From Eukaryota sp. TZLM1-RC (taxonomy: Eukaryota > Protista > Metamonada: BaSk clade), in assembly GCA_040285825.1 (NCBI GenBank), contig JAUPSS010000012.1, forward strand, positions 496,001 through 560,000: a DNA stretch of 64,000 nt. Reading direction: 5' to 3'. The notes below the pieces were generated by a model. The model searched no databases, was not told the DNA's origin, and worked only from the letters and a program-made list of their open reading frames with translations. The position numbers and the translations under genes are program-made. This document shows positions 2,013 to 64,000 of the stretch, one piece after another. The stretch's first letter is position 1; the number at the start of each line of letters is the position of its first letter.

Positions 2013-4130
2013 GGTAAATGTACCATAAATGAAATGGTGTACCATACAGCAATGTGTATTATCGATATCTTTTATTTATCTTATCGTGGGACACTTCCGA
2101 TAAGTATATTGTTAACAAAATATCGTATCTTATTTATCGACATATCGAGCCTCAAGACGATAAATATATCGTCGATAATCAAGTGGATAAGTCACAATTT
2201 TGTGCTTAAAAACAGTAGTGTTTATTCCTTAAGCTTAAAATTCCATATTATCATCACCTAAACCTTCATCGTCTTCGCTATCAACTCCAACATCCTCCAA
2301 TTCTTTCCCCGACATTAAACGGCGAACTGTTTCATAATCCCAGAACTGCCTGTTATAAAATAGGAAAAGTTGCTTTTCAAGAGATGCAGGGGTCATGTTT
2401 GGTCGTGTCGTACCATATGTCCTTTTAGCAGCACTAAAAAGCCTTTCGACTTCACAACTTGTTGCAGGAATCCAGTCAAGATCGATATACTTGGATTCTT
2501 TGTTCTTTTTCGCTTGCTGGCGCATTTCCATTCTTTTATCAAAGTCTAGGTCACTGGTCTAGACTAGCAAGTATGCCGTCAATAATATCACAATACTCTT
2601 CAGCACCCAGAAGGGTCGTGGCATCGTCAAAAGGTTGTTGGTCAGTCACTTCAAGTTCAGTTTCAAAGGGAGTAAGTGCAAGAAGGATAGGTTTTTCGAG
2701 ACCTAGACCAACAGCAAAGAAAAAATGCCTTTTATGGTACTACCATAAAAGGCGTTTTTTATAGAATACCCGTAATCAATACAACTTTATTGCCTGAAAC
2801 AAAAGCTCTATAAAACAAGCAATGGAACAGTTATAACTTAGCAGTTTTTACGTGGTCTACCTCGTGGAAGTTTCAAAGGAGGCACTTCAAATGCAGAACG
2901 ATTTCTACGGGTACTTCTAGAACCTAAAGGTCGTCCTCTTGTCTTTTTTACAGAAGGAGCAAAAGGTATGTTCTGTACGGATGTCACGAATTGGTTTATA
3001 GAAGACGTCAGAAATTGACACTGTTCTTCGGATAGCGAAGCGGAAGAAGGAAGCTCTTACGGCGTGGTATCAGTTGGAACAGGAACTTGTGGCTGTGAGG
3101 GAACTTGAATAGGAACATGGGAATGCTCCAAATGCCAGTGAAGATGGCATAAATCGACTGAGAGTTGGTTTCCGCTTTCATACAGTTGATGAAGCTGAGA
3201 TGATGACGGAAGACCAAAGTTGGATGAAAGCTGATCATTGGGAAGAGAGTCGCATTGTGATTGTGATCTTATCAATTCGTCCGCAACCAGGATGCAGATG
3301 AAATTGGGAAGTTTTTTTAAGATAGGTTGAATGAAAGAATTTACGCATTCTGGATAGATCAAGTTAATATCAACGTCTCTAGTCTTTTGAAGTTTGTGTT
3401 CAGCCACTATATTCGACCACATAACAACCGTCTTCTCCGCAATATCTGCCAAATCACCAGTGGATACTTTAAGATATCTTTTCAGAACACTGTGAATTGA
3501 TTCAACTCGAGATGAAGCCCTCTGTCCACGGTTGAAATTATAAGTTGTATGACAAACCAGAAATTTTTCCCAATAATTGTCAACCAAATCATCGAGATAA
3601 TCAATCAACTGGGGAAACATGTGGAACTCCATATCAATTTTGTTCTTTTTCTGCAGCATTGACGCGTGGTCCCCGGCATAGCAAACTGATTTCCATAAAT
3701 TTCGTACTTTGTATTCCAGATCAGTATCTCGTACGAAAGAACGGCTCTTGGTTTCTACATTCTTATTGATATGCCATAAGCATACTCCATGTTTAACATT
3801 TGGAAAAATGATTTCAATGGCTGTCGCCAAGGCTTGCTCTCGATCAGTTAAAATTGTTTCAGTGTACTGCAGAGTAGGATAAACTTTTACCACCTTCGTT
3901 TTTACAACGGGAGTTGCCTCTTTTTTGACAACAGAAAAGACAAGTGTAGTCACATGAATGAGCTACTATCAGAGCATAGCCGAAGGCAAAACAGTGTGCA
4001 TAAAGGGAGGTTTTCATATTGGTGAAACTGTCTGCCTTAAGATCAGAGAAGTTTATATATGAAGTTCAGACGAAACAGAATGTGGTACGTGAATGAAATT
4101 GTGGTACGTTTTCATTATGGTACATTTACC
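2013..4130 (-). mobile_element. Mutator-like (MULE) DNA transposon, internally deleted
   Basis: Inverted termini GGTAAATGTACCATAA at 2013 and TTATGGTACATTTACC ending 4130. ORF 3057..3953 has ILTDREQALATAIEIIFPNVKHGVCLWHINKNV and SSRVESIHSVLK. A frameshifted C-terminus TRGRPLGSRSTRRNRSAFEV lies near 2885-2950. No TSD found. Confidence 0.82.
2047..2719 (-). pseudogene. hAT transposon 3' remnant (C-terminal dimerisation domain) nested in the MULE left end
   Basis: ORF 2235..2531 has WIPATSCEVERLFSAAK...LEKQLFLFYN. TATCG-rich subterminal repeats at 2055-2180. CAG terminus at 2047. Confidence 0.8.
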
Positions 4131-19716: not shown

Positions 19717-19949
19717 GTTTTATGTAAGTGTTAATTGATTTTACTGAATTCTGGAATATGGTCTGTGAGTGCAAATCCAAATGCATTTACCAAACCTACA
19801 TTGGAAATCCATTCTTCATTACAACTCCAGACACTATTGAGCTGCCACATCGTTTAAGATGGACTGATATTTTCTTCTACAGAGATCTTCTTGACTAGTC
19901 TCTTCGAAGTTCCTTCCTGTCTTCTTTTAGCACTTGATGAGGATGTGCT

Positions 19950-21620
19950 TGTTTCGGGAAATGTGATGGACAGTTTTTTCTGTTGTGGCCTTCACCGCGA
20001 CATATACCACATCTCGGTTATTTGTCCTTCTCAGCAGTCTTTTTTTTCTGATCTCTCTGTGAAGTATATGGTTTATTTTCGAAATCTTTTGTTTGAGTTC
20101 TTGGCCTCTCGAAAATGGATGGTCTACCTTCATCGTTGATTGCAGATGTTTTGATGGATTATATATTTATGGCAGAGTTGAAGTCTCCATTCCAATACGT
20201 GCTGCACGTCTGACACTTCACTAAACCCCACAGTGTTGATTCTGCTTTTTCTTCTAGTGAATCCTTTTGTTCATCCCATTCTTGTTGAAAATCTCTTTTT
20301 CTAGTAGGATTGTTTTGATTAAATAATTCAATTTCTTGTTTTAACTTTTTTGCTTTTCTTTTTAGTTGCCGTTTGCCCTTAGGACCTAACACTTTACTGC
20401 TAGATTCATTGACACATTTTCCAAAATTTCCCCTTGGAAGCACAACTAGAACAACATTTACTCGTTCCATATTCATCATCTAGGAAAATTAACCAAATCT
20501 TCTTAATAGTTTGCGAATTTCGGTTCTTCTTATGGTTTTCATTTTCCCAAAAGACAAAAGTTGCTTGTATTTCCTTTCGAGCTCCAGTCACCAGAACCAA
20601 TAACTACTTCTTCAGGGGTGCCAAAGGTCGATTTGAGTCTTTCCGACATGTTTTTTTCACCTCTTTGATTATTTACTTTTCGACATTTTCAGCAGACAAG
20701 GAATGTATGTATCGCTTTGGCTACGCTAACGTCTTGGAAGTAAAATTCTTGAAAACATTGCCATTTTCATCAACCAGGTCTTTACGAATTAAGACCACTG
20801 AACAAGGAATCACGTCTGTTATAATTGAGGAGAAACAATTGAAAGCAGCCTTCAGTCTTTTCGTTTGTAAGAATCTAATACCTTATTAGTTAGTATTTCG
20901 GTAAAAACTGATGATCTTATGTTATTTGCTCTACCTTTCAACTTGCTAAATCTTTCATTGAGCCAATGAGTATCGAGTCTTTTATGCTGTGGAATCAATG
21001 TAGTTGTCAATGGAAAAGGATTACTGACCGACAAAGGTTTGCTATCTTGGGAACAAAATGATTGAATTGTTCCGATATTATATATAGCCTGAGAGAGAAA
21101 TTTCAATGGCTTGACTGATTGAGAAAAATCAATGTTTTTACCCTTGATCAAAGTTGGAACTAAACAATGATTCACATAAGCAAAAATTTTCAAATTTAAC
21201 TCTGACTGGCAGAAGGGAAAAACAATGTGATCATTGCTTGGAAGTTGATCAAAGTTTCCACCGGTAATAGCTTCCCTGACGTTGTCGAGTTTAGGCAATA
21301 ATTCGTTCTTCAAATGATTTTCGTGAATTTCTTGTTGTTGGAACTTCATCAAGGTGATAATAACTAAAGAACGCCAAACATATTTATTAACGTGTTTGCT
21401 GAGATTATTTCCATAGCTATTGGAAATTTGTTTTGCCGTGTAATGAGAAACTCGATTCATTGATGTATTATCAGGAAATTGAATCCTTCTTTGACCAAGC
21501 TCATTATCAAGATTTTGTAGAATTGGATAGCAAAAATTCAGGTAATTAAAACTAATTTTCTGTTTCAAAGTGCAATTCGAAATATCCATATCTTTAATTA
21601 CGCTTTTGGCTTTAATTCTT
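19950..21620 (-). pseudogene. Fanzor1 (eukaryotic TnpB-like RNA-guided nuclease) relic A, with C-terminal CCHC knuckle
   Basis: Across frameshifts: YTAKQISNSYGNNL, NPFPLTTTLIPQHKRLDT, FSSIITDVIPCSV, VIGSGDWSSKG, IRKLLRRFG, FLDDEYGTSKCCSSC (RuvC-II/Zn), LWGLVKCQTCSTYWNGDFNSAINI (Zn/RuvC-III) and GRPSIFER. The RuvC-I region appears deleted near 20670. Confidence 0.85.
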
Positions 21621-21809
21621 CATAGTTCCGAATCCAAAATATTTATGTCTGCCTTACAACTAATTTAATTGAAGAATTAAATATAAAATAATTAGACATT
21701 AAGTAATGATTGATCACCTACACAGACACTGAAAATGTCCAATACACTAGCCCAAATTACGAAATTCAAACCACCTCAGCAATTTGAATTATGGTCTAAT
21801 ATGCAACGG

Positions 21810-23580
21810 TATGGTTGAGAATGACCCAGATGTCTTGGTCTTTGAAAAGTAGAATGAATGAAAAACAATGAAGATGGGACCCAAAATGCCGTGGCAGAGC
21901 AAGACAGAAACCAGACAATTGAAAATGCAAACACCGAATTATCCGCATTTGCTCCAATTCAGCAACTTTTATAGACTATTCCCTCTTTTCAGTTGCCAAA
22001 CTTCAGCAAGTTTTTTTGACAATTTACTTTTACAGTTTTGACTTGTGGAGCATTCATAAAATGTAAGCTTTCATTAAAAAGCAAAAGACTGAGAGTTGGT
22101 TGCAAAAAAATCTTGTTCCGCAGTTTGGCAATCCAAAAGACACTTTAATACTAATGGGTGATTATAGTACAAAAGGTTCCAAGAATTTGAAACATCAGAG
22201 ACCTACTCGAGGCATTGGATGGATTTAAGTTCTGAAAAGAAATGGATTTGAGGTATTGATGATTAATGAAGCTTTCATTTCAGCCAAATGTCCTGTTTGT
22301 TTACTTTATTTATTGAATTTGCACACTTGATTAAATTAAATCATAACTAATGGGACGACTATCATTAAACCAAGATTTCCTCTACAAAATCTTGATTTGC
22401 TTGTTGTCTAGCTAAAGCTTCTCTAATTCGATTGAAAAACCGCGGTAATCTATTAATAATGGCAAATTGAATCCGTGAACGCCATAAAAAAATATCAAAT
22501 CTTTTCATTGTTTTTTCTTTCACCATTTTTTGGAAGTCATCCAAAAAAGTTTCTGCTTCAACTGATAATCTTCCATTTATCGAAAATGGGAAAACAATAA
22601 AAACCAGCTGTGTATTTCTATCGACATTTGCATCTTCAATTTCTTTATCATATTTTCTATGTTTTTCTTTTGCTTTAAAATCCAGAGCAGCCACAGGATT
22701 AAGTTTTCTTCTGTGAACCAAAGTATCGTTTGCAACATTACATGAGACAAAGTCAACAATAGCTTCAGAATTATCAATCCAATCACAGTATACATCACCT
22801 CTATCATCAGAACCAAAATTATTCAGAGAAAGTGTTTCTTTCAGCAGGGGCTCTTTGATACACGATATCCTTGCAGTTTGTGCCATATTGAAAACAGTGT
22901 CTCTAACAGCATCATGTAATGAAGAACGATAAGTTATCAATTTAGAGCAATTTAGAGCATGGCGCAAAGTGAGTTGAGGTGAATTCGAACAAATACATTT
23001 TTCTTTTGATAATAATTGGTTAATGGGGATGTTCAAATATAATCTCATTTTTGTTACAAATGCTTCATTAGTGGCACACAATCCAAATCTTCGTGGTACA
23101 ATGGTTACAAAAAGTGAAGAATCTGACGCCTTGTTTTCACAAACACCCTTTTCCAATAACAATGAGTGAAGATCTTGATTTAAAACAGCCGAGCTGCAAA
23201 TATTATTATAAAGATCTTTTTCATACATTCCAGTCAATCTTTTCTGTAATGTTCGAAGAGTGTACTTCAAAATTAAAACATTTTTTTCTGGAATATTGCC
23301 ATTGAATGATTGGGGAAAACATCGACCCCATGACATCCTGTTTGTTTTGAAAATGTTGATAGGTTTGTAAAATAAAAAATCCCAGATGATATAGAGGAGA
23401 AAAGACTCATGTTACTACATGTCATGGTTTATTAGCTTGTAACAGTGAGAGTTGCAAACTCAGTAACAAAGACTCAACAAAGCTTTTCAATAGAAATAAG
23501 CTGGCTTGTCTGAATATGCTTGCAATTGCTGAAGCTAGAATGAGTGGTAATGAAAGCTTTTATTATCTGTGTTGTTGATA
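21810..23580 (+). pseudogene. Fanzor1 relic B, interrupted by a non-LTR insertion
   Basis: 22070-22302 reads FIKKQKTESWLQKNLVPQFGNPKDTLILMGDYSTKG...RPTRGIGWI*VLKRNGFEVLMINEAFISAKCPVC. After the insert, 23336-23580 reads CFENVDRF, then KNPR*YRG...TCHGLLACNSESC...LFNRNKLACLNMLAIA. Confidence 0.85.
22303..23335 (-). mobile_element. 5'-truncated CRE-like non-LTR retrotransposon (CCHC plus restriction-like endonuclease end) with 12-bp TSD
   Basis: ORF 22365..23336 has CIC...HALNC...HDAVRD...KEP...RGDVY. AATAAATAAA tail. TSD TCCTGTTTGTTT at 22291-22302 and 23336-23347. Confidence 0.92.
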
Positions 23581-23683
23581 GCATTGTAATTATTCGGTGT
23601 GAAAATTGATTGTGTATTTATGGGAATTTCTTACAGGTGATTTTTGAGCTTAAATCCGATCTACTTTTCTCTTTCAAACAACT

Positions 23684-39605: not shown

Positions 39606-39724
39606 TGAGATTGGGGTTGATTTTGAAAAATTGAATTCTATTGGTCAAATTCAGCTGGTGCAAATAATTATTGTTCAATTTCTTTGCAACAGAACTTTGT
39701 CACTGGAAAATGAAATTGATGTTT

Positions 39725-40810
39725 TCCACAATCATTCAATGGCAATATTCCTGAAAAACATTACTTGTATTTAAAAGACACGGTTCGAACAATACAAAGA
39801 CGAAGAACTAAAATGTATGAAGATAAATTGTTCAAAAAATCCTAATAGACCCCTATTTGACACATCATGCCACGTCATCACTGGTTTAGAAAGTGATCTT
39901 ATGTCTTATATTTCACTGACTGGAATGTATGAAAATGATTATTATAATAATTTATGCAGCTCGGTTGTTTTTGAACAGGATCTCCATTCATTGTTATTGG
40001 AAAAAGGTCTGTGCAACAATCAGTTATCAGAATCATCACTATTTGCAACCATTGTACCACGAAGGTTTGGGATATGTGTCTATAATGAGCCGTTTGTGAC
40101 AAAAATGAAATTATGTCTGATCTACCCAATGAGCCAACTTCTATTAAAAGAAAAACCGTATCTGTTGAAATTGATCACATCTTACCAGACACCATGCTTT
40201 AAATTGTCCCAAGTTGATAACGTATAGCTTTTCAATACATGATTCTGTTAGAGACACTGTTTTTAATATGGCAAGAAATGCCAAAATCTTATGTATTATG
40301 GAGCTTTTGGGTTGAGAAACACTGTCATTGAATTAGTTTGGTTCCAATGATAGAGGTGATATTATTATGATTGTATTGATCACCATGCAGTTATTGTTGA
40401 CTTTTTCTCCTCGAGTGTTGCAAATGACAATTTGGTTTGAAGGAAAAAACTTCATCCTGCTGAAGCAGTTGAATTAAAAGTGAATGACAAACATAAAAAA
40501 ACGACAAAGCTATCGAAGAAGCTAATGTTAATAGCAATAGACCACTTGTTATTCATTACTTCTCCATTTTCCGAAAACGAAAGTCTATCAGTAGCTGCAT
40601 GAGTTTTTGTGAATGATTTCCAAGAAGTGGTTGAAGAAATAACCATGAAATGATTTGATATCTTTTTCGTGGTGTAGGTTAAGTCAATTTACTCAGGTTC
40701 AATTGATTTATTTAAATTGTTTCGGTTATTACATCGAGTAAGTGCAGCAATGGTGAGAAAACAAGCAGATCAGAATTGTAGAGGAATTGTTTTTTTCACT
40801 GAATGTTGTC
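39725..40810 (+). mobile_element. old degenerate non-LTR retrotransposon 3' fragment
   Basis: Diverged copy of the 22303..23335 family (LTGMYE...LHSLLLEKG...IVPRRFG). Carries a ~110-bp insertion at ~39804-39916. Confidence 0.8.
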
Positions 40811-40978
40811 CCAAAAGTTTAATTTTAATGGGTGTTGTAGTTCCATGGAAAATTATACTTTAGAAATCGCAAAAATTGTTACCTGAAAGCCACTTCAAAA
40901 ATAATAATCAAACCAATGTTTAAATTGTTGTAAAAAAATCCATAGTTCGTTTCAAAAATTTCATGCTGGATGTTTGTA

Positions 40979-43972: not shown

Positions 43973-45123
43973 GGAAGTATTATGACATATGCCAACTACA
44001 ACAAGATTTTACTGGTAGACAAAACTAATCTTCAAGATAAACAGGTCTTCCCTCTTAACTCAACCAGTGATCAAATACATTCAATGTATTCAAACAAGCC
44101 AGCTTGTTCATGTTCTCATACCTTGCTTTGATTACTTCTCTATTTTCGGGTTTTTACATCGTGCTTTCGATACAACGATCACTTCTACAATCCAACAGCC
44201 AATGTGGAGACTGGAGCGTTGTTAGTTCAGCACTATTAGGTATTGGATCTTTTGTTTTAATCGTCGTTCCAAATACTTTTTCAAAGCACGGAGGACAGTC
44301 TGAAGAAGTATTGCTTTCGTCAAAACAACAGTTTGGAAAACTCGTATAATAAGACAGCTAATCTATCTATTGGAGGGTGTTGGGGGACTTATTATTGAGA
44401 TTACTAATTGGTTTTCGACCAAAGTCCGCAATACACAAACCTAACTACATCCCAAAAATGACTTTTTGCAAAAAAATATAAATTAGATGTGTAATCAGAA
44501 TTTTCAGAATTTTGCAAGTAATTGATTAATTCATTTCGATCCCCACCAGTCGTCAAATCCTTAATTATTGTCAAACGAAATCTTCAATAACTGAAAAATC
44601 TTTGGTATTGTAGATAATGAGTAGTGGTGGGCGTGGCGGAAGTGGGGCTGGTAATTGGGGATGGAGATGCGAATTGTTGGGGAAAGAAAGATCAACATGT
44701 GAAGCGATCGACATAAGCATTGGAAAAAATGGGGGTAGCATATTACCTAATTGCCTGTCAAAAATCATCTTGAATTTCAAAACTTAAAACACTTTTAACC
44801 ACCGCTTAAGCTGTCTTTCTATTAATCTACTACATCAGACAACCATATACAATATTTTCTAGGAGAAGTGACGTGGTATGAGAAATTTGATGCCTTGGCT
44901 CGGAATTCTGATTCCTTACAAATGTTTTTATTTTCAGCTTTCGAATGAGTAATTTATTAGTCAATTGACATGCAGCTAGGAGCAAATAATTATCTAGAAT
45001 TCAAAACGAAATCATTCAAATAAAGAATATAAATATGACAACATCACCATCACACGTTAATCTAATATTCTGATCAGTGGAGGGGGTGTAGATTATGGAC
45101 GTTGGAGTCATTTTCTCCAATAT

Positions 45124-46514: not shown

Positions 46515-47289
46515 ATATTGTGTTATAGCAGCTTCAACAATGAAGATTGCCACTGCTTCTTCCATGGTAAAGACAAATATTGATATAATAATTGAAATAA
46601 GCAAAGCTGTGTATTTATTGAATTTGCACACTTAATTAACTTAACTCATAACTAATGGCAATATCAGCAAAGCACAAGACATTTGAAGTCCAAGAATTTT
46701 CAATTTCCTGAAAAATATTAAAACATAAACCAAATAATTAGTAACCAAAATCGTAATTGTTTTCTCGTTACAGCTTTTGGTAACATAACTGATGATTCTG
46801 ATGATTCCATCATTTAGCTCCGAGTTGCATTTTGATTCACAAACTTGTCCAACTAGAAACAAATGTTGAACTATGAAGAATGTCATTATTTTACAGAGCA
46901 ATACCAAAAGAAATCACGCCATTTAAACCACTGGAACAACATAGAAAAACCATTTTTTGAAGTCCAGAGAGACTTCAATTGGATACTATGTTTTTCATGC
47001 ACATTGAAAATTTCCAAACATTTTTTTTACTGAAATGTAGATGATATCTTCATTTTTAACTGAAAAGCAACCACATGTGGAATATAGTAGATTTATTTGA
47101 AAAAGCAATATGATATTAATAGAAACAATGAAATTTGAAATTAAACAAATAAAAACAACAAATACAAATACCAAGTCAAAATCAACAATGATTAAGTACC
47201 CAACCATTCAATTAGAGAATTGTCCCACCAGCTTTGAAAAGACCTTGGACGCAATAGGTGAGTTTCAAGTGAACTAGCAGAGTATTTAT

Positions 47290-53214: not shown

Positions 53215-53933
53215 ATTAGTTTCTGTCGTTTCAGAACTATCTTGCTTGAAATTGTTTATAAATTATTGTGTTTATTCATTTAGTATATATATAATTGGAC
53301 ATAATGGCACTACACCTTCAATTAATAGTATAACATTCTTTTTCACTTTGAGTATTGAAAAAAAGTTCAATATAAACTGAATCTTATTCCATATATACAT
53401 AATCAATTCTCGTGAATAATCACAAATACTAACTACTGCACAGATATGGAGGTCGCTCGTAACCACTCATACTGGCTTCAGCAATTGTGAAAATAATCAG
53501 ACAAACCAGCTCATTTCTATTGAAAAGCGTTGGTGAACCATTGTGACTGAATTTACAACTCTCACTATCACAATCTGTTAAACCATGACAGGTAGTAAGT
53601 AGAAACTTCTCTCTTATCAAATGTGGGATTTGCTACTCTCAAAAACGTATCAACCTTTCAAAACAAACAGAACATTTTGCAGACATTGAAACCATCCAAT
53701 TGTTTGAGTAGGTCGTTGATGTTTCAAAATTTTAATGGCGTTGAAATTGTGAGTATACAATACTTTTGTTATTTGCTCTTCTATTTATCAAACAAATTTT
53801 GATGTAGTATCCAATTCAAATCTTTGGTGGATAGTTGGTTTTCTTTACGTTATCAACATTGTGCCAAATCCCAATGTTGAATTTTGTTTTTGTTGCCATT
53901 TACACACCCATTTACTCATCTACTGTGCAGACT

Positions 53934-54575
53934 CTGTATACATTGGGTAACACAGTTCAGCATTGTCGTTCACATTGTTTTAACATGGGCCTCCTTGTAT
54001 CATCATACATGTAATTGGTCGTTTTCATCTTTAATTTTTTCTGATCGCTGAACAGGATACTGAACAGTGTAAGGGATTAAGAATGCTCTTCATTAATTGG
54101 GATATCTTCTTTGTCCTTTTGCTTTTTCCTTATTTGGAACTTTGAATAAAATTGTCTTATCTTTTTTGGACGAATTTTCATCTATTGTCAAAAACAGAAT
54201 CGGAAGATTATTTGGTTGAACTCTTTGGCCAAACAGAATTGTATTTTCTATTTTCTGTATACATTGGGTAACACAGTTCAGCATTGTCTTTCACATTGTT
54301 TTAACATGGGCCTCCTTGTATCATCATACATGTAATTGGTCGTTTTCATCTTTAATTTTTTCTGATCGCTGAACAGGATACTGAACAGTGTAAGGGATTA
54401 AGAATGCTCTTCATTAATTGGGATATCTTCTTTGTCCTTTTGCTTTTTCCTTATTTGGAACTTTGAATAAAATTGTCTTATCTTTTTTGGACGAATTTTC
54501 ATCTATTGTCAAAAACAGAATCGGAAGATTATTTGGTTGAACTCTTTGGCCAAACAGAATTGTATTTTCTATTTT
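53934..54575. repeat. near-perfect tandem duplication, 2 x 321 bp
   Basis: Units 53934-54254 and 54255-54575. One substitution noticed (tgtcgttcac vs tgtctttcac). The unit end includes a non-LTR 3' fragment (WPNRIVFSIF) that continues to ~54700. Confidence 0.92.
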
Positions 54576-55149: not shown

Positions 55150-55808
55150 ATTTTATTTATTCCAATAAAAAACAAACTATTCGATCAACGTTTAAATTCT
55201 ACATTATCATAACCCAAATCAGCCAAAAAGAATTGACTGGAAGTTTTTCTTTCATAAACGCGTCCAGGAGATAATAAAGCTGAAAATAATAAGGGAACAA
55301 CACCATTGAAAACTGAAAATACAATTCTGTTTTGCCAAAAACCCTTGTCAAAAACTCTTCCAGTACGTTGTTGCACAATTTCAACAAAATCATCCAGAAA
55401 AGACAAAGCAAGAGGTCCAAGCGTGCCATGAAGGAAAACGTCAAATGGACAAAGGACATAATGAGTATGCGATTCTACATTCACGGATAACAATTTTGTT
55501 TTGTATATGTCAATTTTGGCTTTTTCGGAAACAGTTAAGGGGTTCCTATATTTTGATTGAGCCATTGGAATAAAAGAATCATTACATACATCAGTGGATC
55601 TCACATCTGTAATAATGGTAGTACCTTCAAGACCTTCAAGCATTAAATCACCTCTATTCAGACCAAACGAAGTCAAAGTATCTTCATCAACCAAACGGAA
55701 AAGTAATGGTTCTAAATAGGAAACAATCGTATGTAATTTTGACATACAATAGAGTTGATCATGAACTTTTGAACGGAAAGTAATTAAATGTTTACAATTG
55801 AATAAATT
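55150..55808 (-). mobile_element. 5'-truncated non-LTR retrotransposon (RLE end)
   Basis: FNCKHLITFRSKVHD...LEP...NRGDLM...ITDVRSTD...FWQNRIVF. Confidence 0.88.
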
Positions 55809-55809
55809 T

Positions 55810-56225
55810 CTTTGGTTCACAGAAGAAAACTTAATCCTGTGGCTGCTCTGGATTTTAATGCAAAAGAGAAACATAGAAAATATGATAAAGATATTGAAGA
55901 GGCTTATGTCGATAGAAATACACAGCTGGTTTTTATTGCTTTCCTATTTTCGATAAATGGAAGATTATCAGTTGAAGCAGAAACTTTTTTGGATGACTTC
56001 CAAAAAATGGTGCAAGAAAAAACAATGAAAAGATTTGATATTTTTTTATGGCGTTCACGGATTCAATTTGCCATTATGAATAGATTACCGCGGTTTTTCA
56101 ATCGAATTAGAGAAGCTTTAGCTAGACAGCAAGCAAATCAAGATTTTGTAGAGGAAATCTTGGTTCAATGATAGTCGTCCCATTAGTTATGAGTTATTTT
56201 AATTAAGTGTGCAAATTCAATAAAT
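55810..56225 (+). mobile_element. 5'-truncated non-LTR retrotransposon 3' end (same young subfamily as 22303..23335)
   Basis: LVHRRKLNPVAALDF...QDFVEEILV. Tail AATTCAATAAAT. Confidence 0.9.
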
Positions 56226-56787
56226 ATTGTTGAATAAATGATTTGGAGAAATTTTTGATCCACATTTACAAATCAAATTATGAGGCACGTTATCAGGCCA
56301 AAATCAACAACGAAGGCGCATTGTACAAGAAAATTCGGAATCATTCAAAAGAAGACCATAAATTTGAGGAATCTGAATAATTTTTTTGGCCGAGCCAAGC
56401 CGAAAATTAAAATACAAGCCCAAAAAATATATTATAAGCCTAAATTGTTAATTGTTGCCGTAATTGTTGGGGTACGTTGTGGAGCAGACTAGGTAAACAG
56501 TCTGACAAAGTTGATCGACATCGTCAGAATTGAACATCCAACATGTGCTTAGTACGGCGACATTTACATAAATTTCAGCTCTTTGTTGATTGAAACGATG
56601 ATTGTTACAAACCAATTGCCATGTTAATGAGAATGGCAATATCAGCCGCAGTTTTGAGTGAATCAACATGTATACTTTGTATTAAAAAATAAAAATCAAA
56701 TCCAACTGCAACATTTACATTTGAGAAAACAATTGAACAAAAATGAATAAAGACCAAAGAGTTAAACAATACTAGAAACAAAAACAC

Positions 56788-58549: not shown

Positions 58550-58623
58550 TGCTCCCTACAGGGATCGAACCTGTGACCTTCGCGTTATTAGCACGACGCT
58601 CTAACCAACTGAGCTAAGAGAGC
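58550..58623 (-). tRNA. tRNA-Ile (anticodon AAT)
   Basis: GCTCTCTTAGCTCAGTTGGTTAGAGCGTCGTGCT-AAT-AACGCGAAGGTCACAGGTTCGATCCCTGTAGGGAGCA folds as a cloverleaf. A T5 Pol III terminator follows. Confidence 0.95.
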
Positions 58624-59427: not shown

Positions 59428-62400
59428 ATACGTATTGGGTCGTCCCCGGCTCAGCGTAGGATCCTTGAGGAAGAGACTGGTCCCTCTTCCTCACCACTAA
59501 CCACAGACCCTGCTTCCGTGCCTCCTTCTTCGGTTGAAGCTTCTGCGCTTCCTGAAGCAACTCTTCCCGAGGGTTCTACCCCAAAGGAAGATAGTTCCCT
59601 TCCTGAGGATTCCGTTCCAATGGAAGGAAGTTCCTCTCCTCGGGATTCCGTTCCTGCGGAAGGAGACAACCCTTCTAAGGATTCTATTCCTTCTGAAGGA
59701 AGAAGTCCTTCATTAGTCTCCTACGACGATGAAGATGTTGAGGATTCCGTTGCTCCTCTTCCCCCTTCGCAATTGAGGGCATCCGAAGTCCCACCTTCTC
59801 CCCTCCCTGGAAGAAGTTCTGAAGTACCATCTTCACCTTCTACTCAGAGCAGAGAGACTGTTCAACCTTCTCTCACTGCAAAAGAAGGATTGGAAGACCA
59901 ACTCTCTTCCCCCTCTAAGAAGGCCATTGAAGTACCATCTTCATCCCTCTCATCTAGTTCTGAGGTTCCACCCTCTCACTCTCAACAGCTTCTTCCTCCA
60001 GTTCCAACTGTTAGGAGGAACATTCAAAATCCTGCTGTTCCAGCTTCAGGATCTCCTCTGACTTCAACAGTTAGTGGAGTTAATAATCTGTCTGTTTCCC
60101 CTCACCAAGCTAGTGATTCCATTCCTAGCCTTTCGAACCTTCCTTCGTATCTTTCCGAAGAGCAAAGGAAAAGGTACGAACAAATCTTTTCAGATTTGGT
60201 TGAGTACGAGGAACCTCCCAAGGAATTCTCCCCTCTACCTCAACATCAGGTCCCTCCCACGGCACCTTCTTCTGAAATTGACAGAATTCCTGGTGAGGTC
60301 CCTAAAGAATATATAAAGCGTTTTCTTCAAGAAGAACGAAACTGGGAACACAGAAAAAGACTGGATAGAGAGATTGAAGCTAGAAGAGGAACATCCTCTA
60401 CACAGGCTCAACCTACCCCTTCTCAAACTAGCTCCCACGCTAGCTCAAGTGTTCATCATGGTGCTTCCCGTCAGCACAACCCTTACGCTAGATATAGGGA
60501 CACACGAGTCATTCCAGAGGACCCAGAGGCCATCCCTCCCACGGAGATGAGCAACAAGCGTCCTCCTTTCTACGGTCCCAAAGTCGAGAACGACTTAGGA
60601 ATATGGATCTCTCCCAGAATTGGTCCATTTCTTTCCGATGAAAGGATCACCCCAGAAACCTCCAGGAATGACCCTGAACCAACTTATGAACCAAGACCCG
60701 GAGTTAGGTTCATGAGAACTACTCGAGAAGGAGTATTCAGACGCTTCGCTGGAGATGAAGACAACCTCTTCTTAAATGTTTACAACCCTTGCCCATACCC
60801 TAGGTTCAGCCCTGGGTACAACGCATCTCTCGATATCCTTATCGACAGAGATTATAGAACAGGGTGGTGGTTTACCGAAACCACATATGGCGAAAGACTC
60901 TTTCTATATGATAGACGTCCCGATCATATAGCTTCATATTGTGGTCCTGACCACAGAAGATCTGGTAATCTTCAAAGAGCCCTCCAGCTCGTCACCGTTT
61001 TCCCTGGATGCATAGAATCCAGGATGTTAAAGTGGGTAATGGTAGAAGGTCGTATAGAGAAAACACGCTTGGTTCAACCAGCGATCTCTTCTTATCAGGT
61101 TCCAGCCCAGATTGAAGAGATAGAACCTTCTCCTGAACCCCACCAACGCGAAGTTCCACCTTCCACAGATCAACCTATGGAAACTTCTACAGAACCCTCG
61201 CATAATCCTCCCATGGAACAAACTGAAGAGGATGTGGTAGTAGAAGTCAGTGATGAGTCCCCAACTCCAGACTCAATTCCAACTGTGCTAGCACCAATGG
61301 AACAAACTCCAGCACCTGCACAGCCTATGGAACAATCAGTGGTTCCACCCACACCTCCCTCCACTAGTTCTACAAGTTCTCAGCCCCCGGTTCAACCAAC
61401 ACCTTCCACAGTAAGTTCTTCTCGTTCTACATTCTCGAATACTTACGACAGCAACCTTCTCCTATCTTCCATGGTGGGATCAAGAGACAGGGACAATAGA
61501 CGTAGGGACCGTCCCAAACGTCCAACTCTCGATGCTTCAGACTTAAGAGATGTTGATAAACTCCTAAAGTTTGTTAACAAATTCATTCTCTGGAGTCGCA
61601 CCGACAGAATAGTCGATGAGGCTCGAGGTAATATCGAAGACCCTGCTCAAGTTGCTTTGGCCAGCGAAGTTGCCAGACTTCGCGAAGAACTCGAACTAGC
61701 CAGATCAGCAGAATTGGCATCTGACCAACGGTTCGACAGCGAACCAGTTCACGAATGGGATCTCTTCCGATCCGCCATGCGCATTAGTCCCAGAGGTTTA
61801 GCTGAATGCGTAACACCTGAAGCTCTCAACGCTTTAAGGTATCAAGGCACTGGCCTTTCAATTTCCTCTGCGATGGTCCCAACCAGCAGAGACGAACGCA
61901 ACATTTGGGAACAGATCCTAAGGAGAACCCAATTCAGTAGACTGGATCAAGCCCTGGACGCACTTCATGCTGTAAACATGGACTGGTCAGAGAGAGATTA
62001 TGGTAACCGATGGATTGACTTCATGCTCAACATTGGCAGAGTTTTAACGCGTTCCACCGCTATCCAAGATGTTCGTGGTCTGACTCAACAGATGAGGCAC
62101 ATCACCATCCATGGTAATCCCATCGACCGACTTCCCGAATGGGAAATTGCTTCTCACGTTATTGAGAGCATAGGTATTACAGTTATCAGGGACAGACTCC
62201 TCAGGATCTGGTCCAATCCCTCCCATTACTACTCAGATGGCCACATTCTAGGAGAATTTTTCAGTGTTCTCCAAATAGAATACGAAAATTTCTGTAATGC
62301 TAGATCTTTTAAGGAGCAGATCAATCACGTGGACTTCTTGTATCAAAACAGAATCTCGTTTCAGACTGAGAACCGTCGCAGACAGACGGTACCTTCTCCC

Positions 62401-64000
62401 CCTGCTATCCCCAAACCAAGAGGTTCCAGCTCTGGCAGGCGCCCAAAACAACAACGACGAGAAGGAAGCTCTACTCAACCGTCTTCCACTCAGTCTGACG
62501 CCAACGTCCAATGCAATTTCTGTAAACAAATGGGTCATCCGACTGAAAGGTGCCCTAGTGAGGACTGCCAAAGAAGCAAAAAGTGGAGAGAGCAACAAGC
62601 TCAACACAAAGCTCGAGGCAGAAGTTCTAGAGGTTCTGGTTTCCGTAGTCGAAGAGGCACTCGCGGCAGAGGCAGAGGCTCTTCATCATATAATAAACGT
62701 TCCCGTCACTATTTACACAGTTTTGAAACCATACCCCCTACAACTACAATGCATTCCCACACAGAAAACACAACATGGAAAGATTCCCTAATCAATCCTT
62801 TGGCCAACTTGGAACATACCAAGACGCATAACATTCAAGCTAATTTCTTCTCAGAACAAGCCGAATATGATTCTGACACAATATTCATGGTACAATCCAT
62901 AAAGTCCACAACCAACTGCCTTCAATTAAACTTCTTGATCAACAATGTCGAGGTTAAAGGCATAATCGACTCTGGCGCAACATGCTCAGTAGTCACGGAA
63001 GACGTCATCAGCAATTGTAACATGGCACGTTCCAACGAAACCATATCATACAAGATTGCTGATGGAACCACCTCACAGTCCCTCGGTACTGCTTCTGGAA
63101 CCCTTAGCATTAGACTAGGCAGTGTTACCCAGATTGTACACGTGAAACACAAGTTCAGCATCGTTCCTGGACATGAGACCATTCTCATTGGTGCTGACTT
63201 ATTGAGTCACCTTGGGCTGATGAACAACAAGGGCATTTATATTAGAATGGACGACGCCTGTCGCACATTACTATTACCTGAAGCTGAATTCGATCATCGA
63301 ATATCACAAGCTTCGGAAGTCGTCAACGTTTCCACACGTTGGTTGGAACACATCAACTCATCTGGTTGTACCATCAACCTCGACAACGACCATTTCAAGA
63401 AGTCCCTACTTCAAACTTTGAAAGAGTTCGAAGACGTATTTACCCTCAAGCCTCATGCTGAAGGTATTGATTGCCCTCCCATGGAAATCAACTTCTACAA
63501 CGAAGACGTCAGAGTTAGAAGACCCCCCAGGACCCTGAATCCAGCCAGGCTAGAGGTCGCTAACCAAATTTTCGACGAACTCGTAGACTCAGGATTTGCT
63601 GTCCCATCGAACCATGAGTTCAGCTCCCCTGTCTGCCTAGTGGTCTACCCAGATCACCGTAAGCCCCGCCTTACCGGTGACTATAGTGGCAAGGACGGAG
63701 TCAACGCCAACACCATCCCTGTTGAGCCCAACCTTCCAAGGATCTCCGATGTGCTGGTATTTCTCTCCCAAGCGAACTACATAGGCACCCTTGACCTCCC
63801 CAAAGCCTTTTGGCAACTCAAGATTGCCGAAAAGGATTGGCAGAAAACAGCCCTGAGCATTCCTGGCAAAAGCATCATGTTCAAACGTGCAGCTTTTGGC
63901 CTAAAGAATGTCCCAGCCGTTTTCCAAAACGTCATGGCTGACATCTTCTCGGGAGACGGTGTCTTCATTTACATAGACGACATCATAATCATAGGTTCAA
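59395..64000 (+). mobile_element. Ty3/Gypsy LTR retrotransposon, single Gag-PR-RT ORF (>1535 codons, open at the window edge)
   Basis: Frame 1 read codon by codon with no stop from ATG 59395. CNFCKQMGHPTERC knuckle (62512-62553), protease GIIDSGA (~62968) and ILIGAD, RT motifs LDLPKAFWQ, AFGLKNVPAVFQ and YIDD (63970). PR-then-RT order indicates Ty3/Gypsy. Confidence 0.95.

Follow-up and report, generated by a model that had tools for sequence, protein, structure and literature searches.

Fanzor1 is well established as an RNA-guided nuclease (PMC10432273, PMC10530073, PMC11423790). Features regarded as diagnostic of Fanzor proteins include a DPG-type RuvC-I motif and an alternative RuvC-II glutamate, which lies six residues ahead of the first zinc-ribbon CxxC (PMC10711439), and the loci of GtFz1, NlovFz2 and MmeFz2 hold little beyond the gene itself (PMC10432273). 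In this report, we describe Fanzor1 remnants in a 64,000-nucleotide stretch of DNA (contig JAUPSS010000012.1, positions 496,001 to 560,000; hereafter, the window) from the anaerobic, free-living metamonad Skoliomonas litria (type strain TZLM1-RC; PMC11603281). A first-pass annotation, made from the sequence of the window alone, had proposed that two different dead Fanzor1 copies lie back to back. Our analysis indicates that these copies, relic A on the minus strand and relic B on the plus strand, are very probably two independently decayed pseudogenes of Fanzor1 that belong to two divergent repeat families of the nuclear genome.

The closest described proteins are the Fanzor1 nucleases of Guillardia theta (GtFz1, PDB 9cer), Spizellomyces punctatus (SpuFz1, 8gkh) and Parasitella parasitica (9cf0). 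The relics have the same domain order as these three and have in common with them the blocks FPL..IP.H.RLDT, TDG..CS and GDW/Y, a glutamate six residues before CxxC, NPRP...HGLL.C...C and NRD..N..NI. A profile of relatives matches the three solved proteins end to end and, as at the GtFz1 locus (PMC10432273), the repeat unit is without inverted repeats or transposase. Unlike the solved proteins, relics A and B are pseudogenes and lack RuvC-I; the (D)PN/G form of this motif is present in their paralogs and not in these two copies. Family B further differs in having asparagine at the position of the RuvC-III aspartate, family A in having a C-terminal CCHC zinc knuckle, and the host of both in being a metamonad. 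Sequence identity with the solved proteins is low (E values of 0.004-0.13 for single pieces). The relics also resemble the TnpB proteins of IS200/IS605 elements, and the non-autonomous derivatives that carry only tnpB, in that a nuclease with RuvC and zinc-ribbon domains is the sole gene of a short mobile unit; as with the tnpB-only derivatives, copies persist after the death of the nuclease gene. They differ from TnpB of IS200/IS605 in their eukaryotic host and in a glutamate position and N-terminal domains that are of Fanzor1 type, and no TnpA, defined left and right ends or target-adjacent motif (TAM) was identified for the relics.

These observations show that Fanzor1 has colonised Metamonada, in the form of Skoliomonas, and that many Fanzor1 lineages are present in this little-studied group. 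It is a branch for which we found no paper mentioning Fanzor in the searchable literature; homologs of transposons receive just a passing mention in the paper on the Skoliomonas genome (PMC11316075). The relics themselves are ordinary decayed repeats, and their value is as markers of the Skoliomonas Fanzor repertoire.

Assignment of the relics to Fanzor1

To build a profile, a stop-free piece of a paralog of relic A (L001:5983-6975; loci and proteins outside the window are cited by L and P numbers) was compared with 1.84 billion representative proteins, which gave 99 matches. From these, 51 full-length relatives were aligned to give a profile of 659 positions. The six frames of the window contain 2,634 stop-free segments, and all of them were scanned with it. 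Each piece was searched singly, and no joined translation was used.

Pieces in the window match the profile in collinear order, and significant segments are confined to relics A and B and to a further fragment, B2 (Table 1). The strongest pieces have E values from 2e-15 to 1e-6, a result well outside what chance would give, and by this collinear and significant similarity to characterised proteins both relics belong with Fanzor1. When the profile was compared with PDB, its sole matches were the solved Fanzor1 structures 9cf0 (E = 8e-106), 8gkh (1e-105) and 9cer (4e-66). The consensus of the 51 relatives contains N.FPLR.S.IPKYI..DT, I.TDGV.CSIL, VGIDPNK.DLIYC, GDW, YLVDE..TSK.C..C, PRP...HGLLRCK.C and NRD.N.S.NI, among which are the motifs previously named as being of Fanzor1 type. 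Of the relatives, 33 of 51 carry the Cas12f1-like TNB domain (PF07282). The ordered motifs on which the two relics had originally been recognised (GD[WY]S..K, [DN]E...S..C..C, [WH]GL..C..C and N.[DN]....N[IM]) were all found where they had been reported, spread over several reading frames.

Two further features are also of Fanzor1 type. In both relics, the RuvC-II glutamate occupies the alternative position, six residues ahead of CxxC (DDEYGTSKCCSSC in A and INEAFISAKCPVC in B), and a zinc ribbon lies between RuvC-II and RuvC-III (CSSC...CQTC in A and CPVC...C(NSES)C in B). The segment with the RuvC-I aspartate of the DPG-type motif is deleted from both window copies and is present in paralogs of both families, as AIDPNE in family A and as VVCDPGKRD in family B (P0269). 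The lineages of both families thus have RuvC-I, which relics A and B have lost. As for RuvC-III, all 50 relatives that show this motif, among those found with the L001 piece, have NRD. At the level of sequence, then, a Fanzor1-type assignment of both relics is supported.

Single pieces were also compared directly with structures and domain families. The top PDB match of the first piece of relic A is G. theta Fanzor1, 9cer (E = 0.0038), aligned over NPFPLTTTLIPQHKRLDT. For the C-terminal piece of relic B, the top two matches are Parasitella 9cf0 (E = 0.037) and Spizellomyces 8gkh (E = 0.13), both weak, and three separate pieces of the relics match PF07282 with E values of 2.9e-4, 0.02 and 0.1, all of them below threshold. 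PDB searches with the C-terminal piece of A and with L001:7446-8084 returned nothing relevant.

Another family with RuvC and zinc-ribbon domains might account for the similarity, be it a prokaryotic TnpB present as contamination, a Fanzor2 or a gene of giant-virus origin. Giant viruses also have Fanzors, and what Pfam detects is only the generic Cas12f1-like TNB domain. Against this stand the restriction of the profile matches to Fanzor1 structures and the match of the N-terminal FPL..IP.H.RLDT block to the G. theta protein. Moreover, the relics lie between ordinary eukaryotic genes, which in the window encode RING-kinase, B-box/RING, BTB and RCC1-repeat proteins and a homocysteine methyltransferase, and they have the same AT-rich composition as the rest of the window (about 35% GC); Fanzor1 families were also found in three Skoliomonas genomes. 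We therefore regard an origin from a different family as extremely improbable, and treat both relics as Fanzor1 in what follows.

Table 1. Fanzor1 relics and associated features in the window. Profile positions refer to the 659-position Fanzor1 profile.
Feature	Position	Strand	Details
Relic A, whole repeat unit	19764-21660	-	~70 nt 5' leader, decayed open reading frame, ~90 nt 3' tail ending ...GCACTCACAGA
A piece 1, N-terminal, REC/WED-like	20855-21619	-	NPFPLTTTLIPQHKRLDT motif; profile 118-294, E 2.2e-15
A piece 2, shifted frame	20724-20882	-	S.I.TD...SV block SSIITDVIPCSVV; TAG at end; profile 332-357, E 1e-3
A internal-deletion breakpoint	20675-20690	-	profile positions 358-497 missing
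A piece 3, GDWS..K block	20542-20688	-	GSGDWSSKG; profile 498-534, E 3.2e-10
A piece 4, RuvC-II Glu and first CxxC	20409-20603	-	DDEYGTSKCCSSC; profile 554-576, E 0.025; PF07282 E 0.02
A piece 5, second CxxC and RuvC-III	20162-20479	-	CQTCSTYWNGDFNSAINI, reading ...WGLVKCQTCSTYWNGDFNSAINI; profile 580-618, E 8e-9; PF07282 E 2.9e-4
A C-terminal extension, two frames	19854-20158	-	CCHC zinc knuckle CGICRGEGHNRKNC; family stop codon ~19854
Relic B, full extent	21740-23636	+	5'-truncated; split by LINE fragment
B most upstream remnant	21740-21800	+	79-87% identity to L005:3919-3979 and L007:3248-3286
B body part 1	21811-22302	+	GDYS..K, RuvC-II Glu and first CxxC MINEAFISAKCPVC; 81-88% DNA identity to L005, L006, L007
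B segment MGDYSTKGSK	22067-22225	+	profile 497-544, E 1.5e-11
B segment MINEAFISAKCPVC	22229-22327	+	profile 549-571, E 0.019
Left target-site duplication copy, 12 bp	22291-22302		TCCTGTTTGTTT; paralogs uninterrupted here
5'-truncated LINE-like fragment, 1,033 bp	22303-23335	-	inserted in B
Right target-site duplication copy, 12 bp	23336-23347		repeat of TCCTGTTTGTTT
B body part 2	23336-23636	+	85-87% DNA identity to three paralogs, same 3' endpoint
B segment TTCHGLLACNSESC...FNRNKLACLNM	23390-23575	+	profile 589-636, E 1.4e-6
Fourth, heavily decayed Fanzor-like fragment	44034-44440	-	tblastn 31-37% to B-family proteins, E 1e-8 to 1e-9
Relic B2, C-terminal B-family fragment	53389-53790	-	uninterrupted at LINE site; 76% DNA identity to 23338-23623
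B2 segment	53432-53632	-	profile 593-637, E 2.9e-4; RuvC-III also NRN

Relic A

Relic A is 85-87% identical in DNA sequence to two other dead S. litria copies (L001:6115-8233 and L002:6124-8343). Homology ends 3' at the same base in all three, ~90 nt past the family stop codon, and its 5' end is common to A and L002 only. In the three-copy alignment, neither terminal inverted repeats nor a target-site duplication could be seen around family A. Repeat-unit boundaries now replace the extents given in the first-pass annotation, which were 19950-21620 for A and 21810-23580 for B (Table 1).

An internal deletion of 356 bp relative to L002, or 546 bp relative to L001, removes RuvC-I from relic A (RIVAIDPNE in both paralogs). 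Relic A has further lesions: indels of +1 and -2 relative to both paralogs near 20850, a TAG that follows ...SKTLA, additional frame changes, and, immediately behind RuvC-III, a TAA in place of the TAT of the paralogs. The RuvC-II glutamate survives, as does the RuvC-III aspartate (NGDFNSAINI). L001 and L002 carry different lesions at different places. Very probably, relic A first lost the RuvC-I segment through the internal deletion and afterward gained frameshifts and stops.

One stop, a TAA after ...GKGQP, is common to all three copies, and their majority consensus is not open either, its longest stop-free stretch being 337 codons. At least part of the copying therefore came after the death of the gene. 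Family A units, in other words, went on being copied with a dead gene, presumably in trans or by duplication.

The C-terminal extension of family A contains a CCHC knuckle that is kept in L001:7796-8125, L002:7982-8245 and protein P0007 of Skoliomonas sp. GEM-RC, and that lies at 19898-20017 (minus strand) in the window. Among the relatives found with the L001 piece, it occurs in Skoliomonas only (S. litria and GEM-RC P0007) and the others are without it; Pfam zinc-knuckle matches to the extension are weak.

Both paralogous loci hold an additional, better-preserved Fanzor of another lineage beside the A copy. The one at L002:3122-4250 (minus strand) matches profile positions 366-653 with E values down to 3.5e-59, and the one at L001:2243-4109 (plus strand) includes a 614-amino-acid gene model with AIDPN, GDEFMTS and SRDISASRN.

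Relic B and its family

Relic B retains nothing N-terminal to profile position ~309. Going upstream, its homology to the paralogs breaks off at 21811 and returns for 60 bp at 21740-21800; on L005, the gap lies between 3979 and 4315, so ~335 bp are deleted, and the deleted segment bears RuvC-I in the paralogs. Body part 1 is 68% identical to residues 106-261 of P0269 by tblastn. Body part 2 begins with the NPR..CHGLLACNSESC half of the zinc ribbon, reaches a stop at 23576-23578 and ends in a family 3' tail of ~55 nt. The in-frame stops GIGWI*, VK*K and NPR* and one frameshift interrupt the reading frame, and RuvC-III reads FNRNKLACLNM, with asparagine in place of the catalytic aspartate. Relic B is thus truncated at its 5' end, lacks the RuvC-I segment and carries the RuvC-III asparagine, as most members of the family do, and it was later struck by a young, 5'-truncated insertion (see below).

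A search with an alignment of the B pieces and their best relatives identified 14 S. litria gene models of 115-339 amino acids, so the family has at least 14 copies; for the five listed, tblastn identity to relic B is 56-79%. Among the 14 models (P0268-P0300), RuvC-III is NRN in 12, DRN in one (L005) and the canonical NRD in one (L007). The ratio of nonsynonymous to synonymous substitution rates (dN/dS) among three family B copies is 0.40-0.63 over the C-terminal ~125-200 codons. This range is consistent with some coding constraint during diversification and does not imply a function for the asparagine form. That the family spread with asparagine at a catalytic position makes one ask whether persistence of the unit depends on nuclease activity.

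Relics A and B are 33% identical over the GD[WY]S block, BLASTP yields no alignment of their C-termini, and each has a paralog family of its own in the S. litria genome. By these measures they are different Fanzor1 lineages, which bears out the earlier proposal that at least two divergent lineages are represented here.

A LINE insertion in relic B

Relic B had been read as a single relic. Its identity as a Fanzor stands, and what had been missed is that a fragment resembling a long interspersed nuclear element (LINE) divides it in two. At L005, L006 and L007, the two B halves are contiguous, overlap by 10-12 bp and contain no insertion at the site; these uninterrupted paralogs, together with the duplication of TCCTGTTTGTTT, establish that B is split by a 1,033-bp insertion. 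A contig assembled from public reads, which derives from an uninterrupted B paralog, joins 22302 to 23373, and the depth of public-read contigs is in the hundreds over the LINE, as opposed to single or double digits in its flanks.

What the open reading frame (ORF) track displays at this site is the LINE, as an intact 323-amino-acid ORF on the minus strand (22365-23336). Its ATG spans the insertion junction, so the start is fortuitous. Searched directly, this ORF had no Pfam or PDB sequence match, and it was identified through its paralogs: more than 150 S. litria protein clusters, of which some comprise 50-138 members, match it at up to 99% identity, and a reverse transcriptase domain (PF00078 RVT_1) is found in longer members of the family. 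Additional copies in the window, at 41447-40978, 56226-55810 and 46612-46658, have the 3' end in common and differ at their 5' ends. The insert is a fragment of a young and very abundant LINE-type retrotransposon.

R2/NeSL-type retrotransposons, which lack long terminal repeats, are recognised by a reverse transcriptase followed by a C-terminal CCHC motif and a PD-(D/E)xK-like endonuclease. For the insert, we found PF00078 in longer members, variable 5' truncation and a 12-bp target-site duplication. A restriction-like endonuclease domain may also be present, as read from the motifs C.C..H...C, RGD and K..KY alone.

An older LINE copy is located at 39718-40819 of the window, and the copy at 55808-56229 is nested in another related element, with ~10 bp duplicated. 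Elsewhere in S. litria, the chimeric gene model P0313 joins the ORF of this LINE to a B-family C-terminus; it represents a second locus where the element lies within a B-family Fanzor, and both its site and its orientation differ from those in relic B.

Pseudogenes or live genes

Neither copy offers an intact nuclease ORF: both have stops, frameshifts and large deletions, with RuvC-I removed by internal deletion in each, and B also has the LINE insertion. In agreement with the first-pass annotation, which considered both to be dead, neither relic is able to encode a working nuclease, and nothing in them acts today except as repeat DNA.

One might still suppose that one or both copies are live genes, and that the apparent frame changes are short introns, programmed frameshifts, effects of a variant genetic code or assembly errors. 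The host is, after all, a eukaryote with introns, its assembly is Nanopore-based (PMC11316075), and National Center for Biotechnology Information gene models cover parts of the paralogs. However, neighbouring stop-free pieces overlap and no GT..AG gaps separate them, the segments that should bear RuvC-I are physically missing, and a LINE with its target-site duplication splits B. The lesions of the paralogs, moreover, differ in kind and place. A variant code was rejected, because long host ORFs in the window terminate with TAA, TAG and TGA alike; the standard code thus applies, and the stops in the relics are real. Live genes are accordingly very improbable, and we retain the reading of two decayed pseudogenes.

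Several points nonetheless weigh against that reading. Single-base frameshifts could in some cases be errors of the Nanopore assembly; that explanation is excluded for the stops caused by substitution, for the deletions and for the LINE insertion. The read evidence consists of short contigs of unknown library type, and not every lesion is verified by it. The boundaries of family A come from three copies, with the 5' end from two only. Finally, the Pfam and PDB matches of single pieces are weak (E 0.0003-0.13), and the strong evidence hinges on a purpose-built profile.

Arrangement and number of Fanzor relics

Relics A and B had been placed ~200 bp apart and back to back. They are in fact arranged head to head, their 5' ends separated by ~80-150 bp. 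This proximity might mean that one element inserted into the other, or that the two homed to each other, rather than that they met by chance in a repeat-rich region, all the more because Fanzor relics cluster: the window has four of them (A, B, B2 and the fragment at 44.03-44.44 kb, whose motifs are DE..TS..CPPC ... HWLLDC...C ... ENMNKLACLN), and every 9-13-kb paralog locus that was fetched holds two or three. We found no B-family sequence on the far side of A, so nested insertion is unsupported; nor was a target-site duplication seen around A. The S. litria genome has 31.9 Mb, 35.8% GC and 55% repeats (PMC11316075), and in a genome so rich in repeats, clustering in repeat islands is expected. 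A mechanistic link between the two insertions is therefore unlikely, and chance proximity is preferred. By the counts above, the S. litria genome is evidently dense in Fanzor relics, and several Fanzor1 lineages occur in Skoliomonas, at high density.

The B2 fragment has a tandem pair of a 321-bp unit, 99% identical, directly upstream of it (53933-54575).

Repeat units and the omegaRNA

As the first-pass annotation had recommended, copies were aligned with one another. This gave boundaries for the family units. No omegaRNA structure was supported, and no TAM was identified. The family repeat unit is essentially the Fanzor gene alone, that is, a short leader, the ORF and a tail of 55-90 nt. Neither terminal inverted repeats nor a transposase turned up in the family units. 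The active form, as extrapolated from the Fanzor family, would cut DNA under the direction of a guide RNA transcribed from the unit's 3' end.

An omegaRNA is expected in the conserved 3' tails, at the ORF's 3' end or overlapping it. The 3' region of A folds no better than shuffled sequences (z = -0.40). Folds of the alignments of three A copies and five B copies contain one or two compensatory pairs, with positive (that is, penalising) covariation terms. No Rfam family matched at the 3' tails of A or B, and one distant tRNA was the only Rfam match.

Intact relatives and exonuclease fusions

The closest intact relatives of family A are two proteins of Skoliomonas sp. TZLM3-RCL, KAL0225525.1 and KAL0227451.1 (P0019 and P0102), which are encoded by single intact ORFs of 1,473 and 1,479 amino acids at L003:2915-7489 and L004:2915-7507. 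Pieces of A match P0019 with E values of 4e-8, 9e-9 and 6e-11, and the C-terminal motif is the same (WGL.RC..C..WNRD.NSAINIY). Unlike relic A, P0019 and P0102 are intact, are without the CCHC knuckle and carry, fused to Fanzor1 at the N-terminus, a 3'-5' exonuclease domain of PolB type (PF03104, 51.8 bits). The 4.6-kb units, which occupy two unrelated loci, share 94% identity and end 67 nt past the stop codon, and dN/dS is 0.20 in both halves of the protein. Such a ratio indicates that the TZLM3-RCL exonuclease-Fanzor1 fusions are under purifying selection, and their architecture lends itself to a direct assay of RNA-guided cutting. The expectation that intact copies exist elsewhere thus holds in this sister species only and is not shown for S. 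litria.

At L006:2668-5276 of S. litria, a B-type Fanzor is immediately preceded, on the same strand, by an ORF for a PolB exonuclease (PF03104, 29.7 bits). An exonuclease fusion probably exists in the B lineage as well.

A more speculative scenario is that family B is not mere debris and owes a recent burst to a master copy that had both the RuvC-III asparagine and an N-terminal proofreading exonuclease of PolB type. It would then be an RNA-guided lineage, nuclease-altered or nuclease-dead and under coding constraint, in which the exonuclease supplies or replaces the processing of DNA. This would make it a eukaryotic counterpart of the bacterial nuclease-dead TnpB derivatives. We consider the scenario a distinctly long shot.

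Other features of the window

For annotation, the analysis implies that the many short "hypothetical protein" models over these S. litria repeats are fragments of Fanzors and LINEs. Part of a MULE transposase domain (PF10551, E = 9e-10) is present in a 298-amino-acid ORF at 3057-3953 (minus strand), and a tRNA gene is predicted at 58550-58623 (minus strand; Rfam, 67 bits). At the right end of the window (60000-64000), GC content rises to 0.46-0.47 and GC skew is strongly negative.

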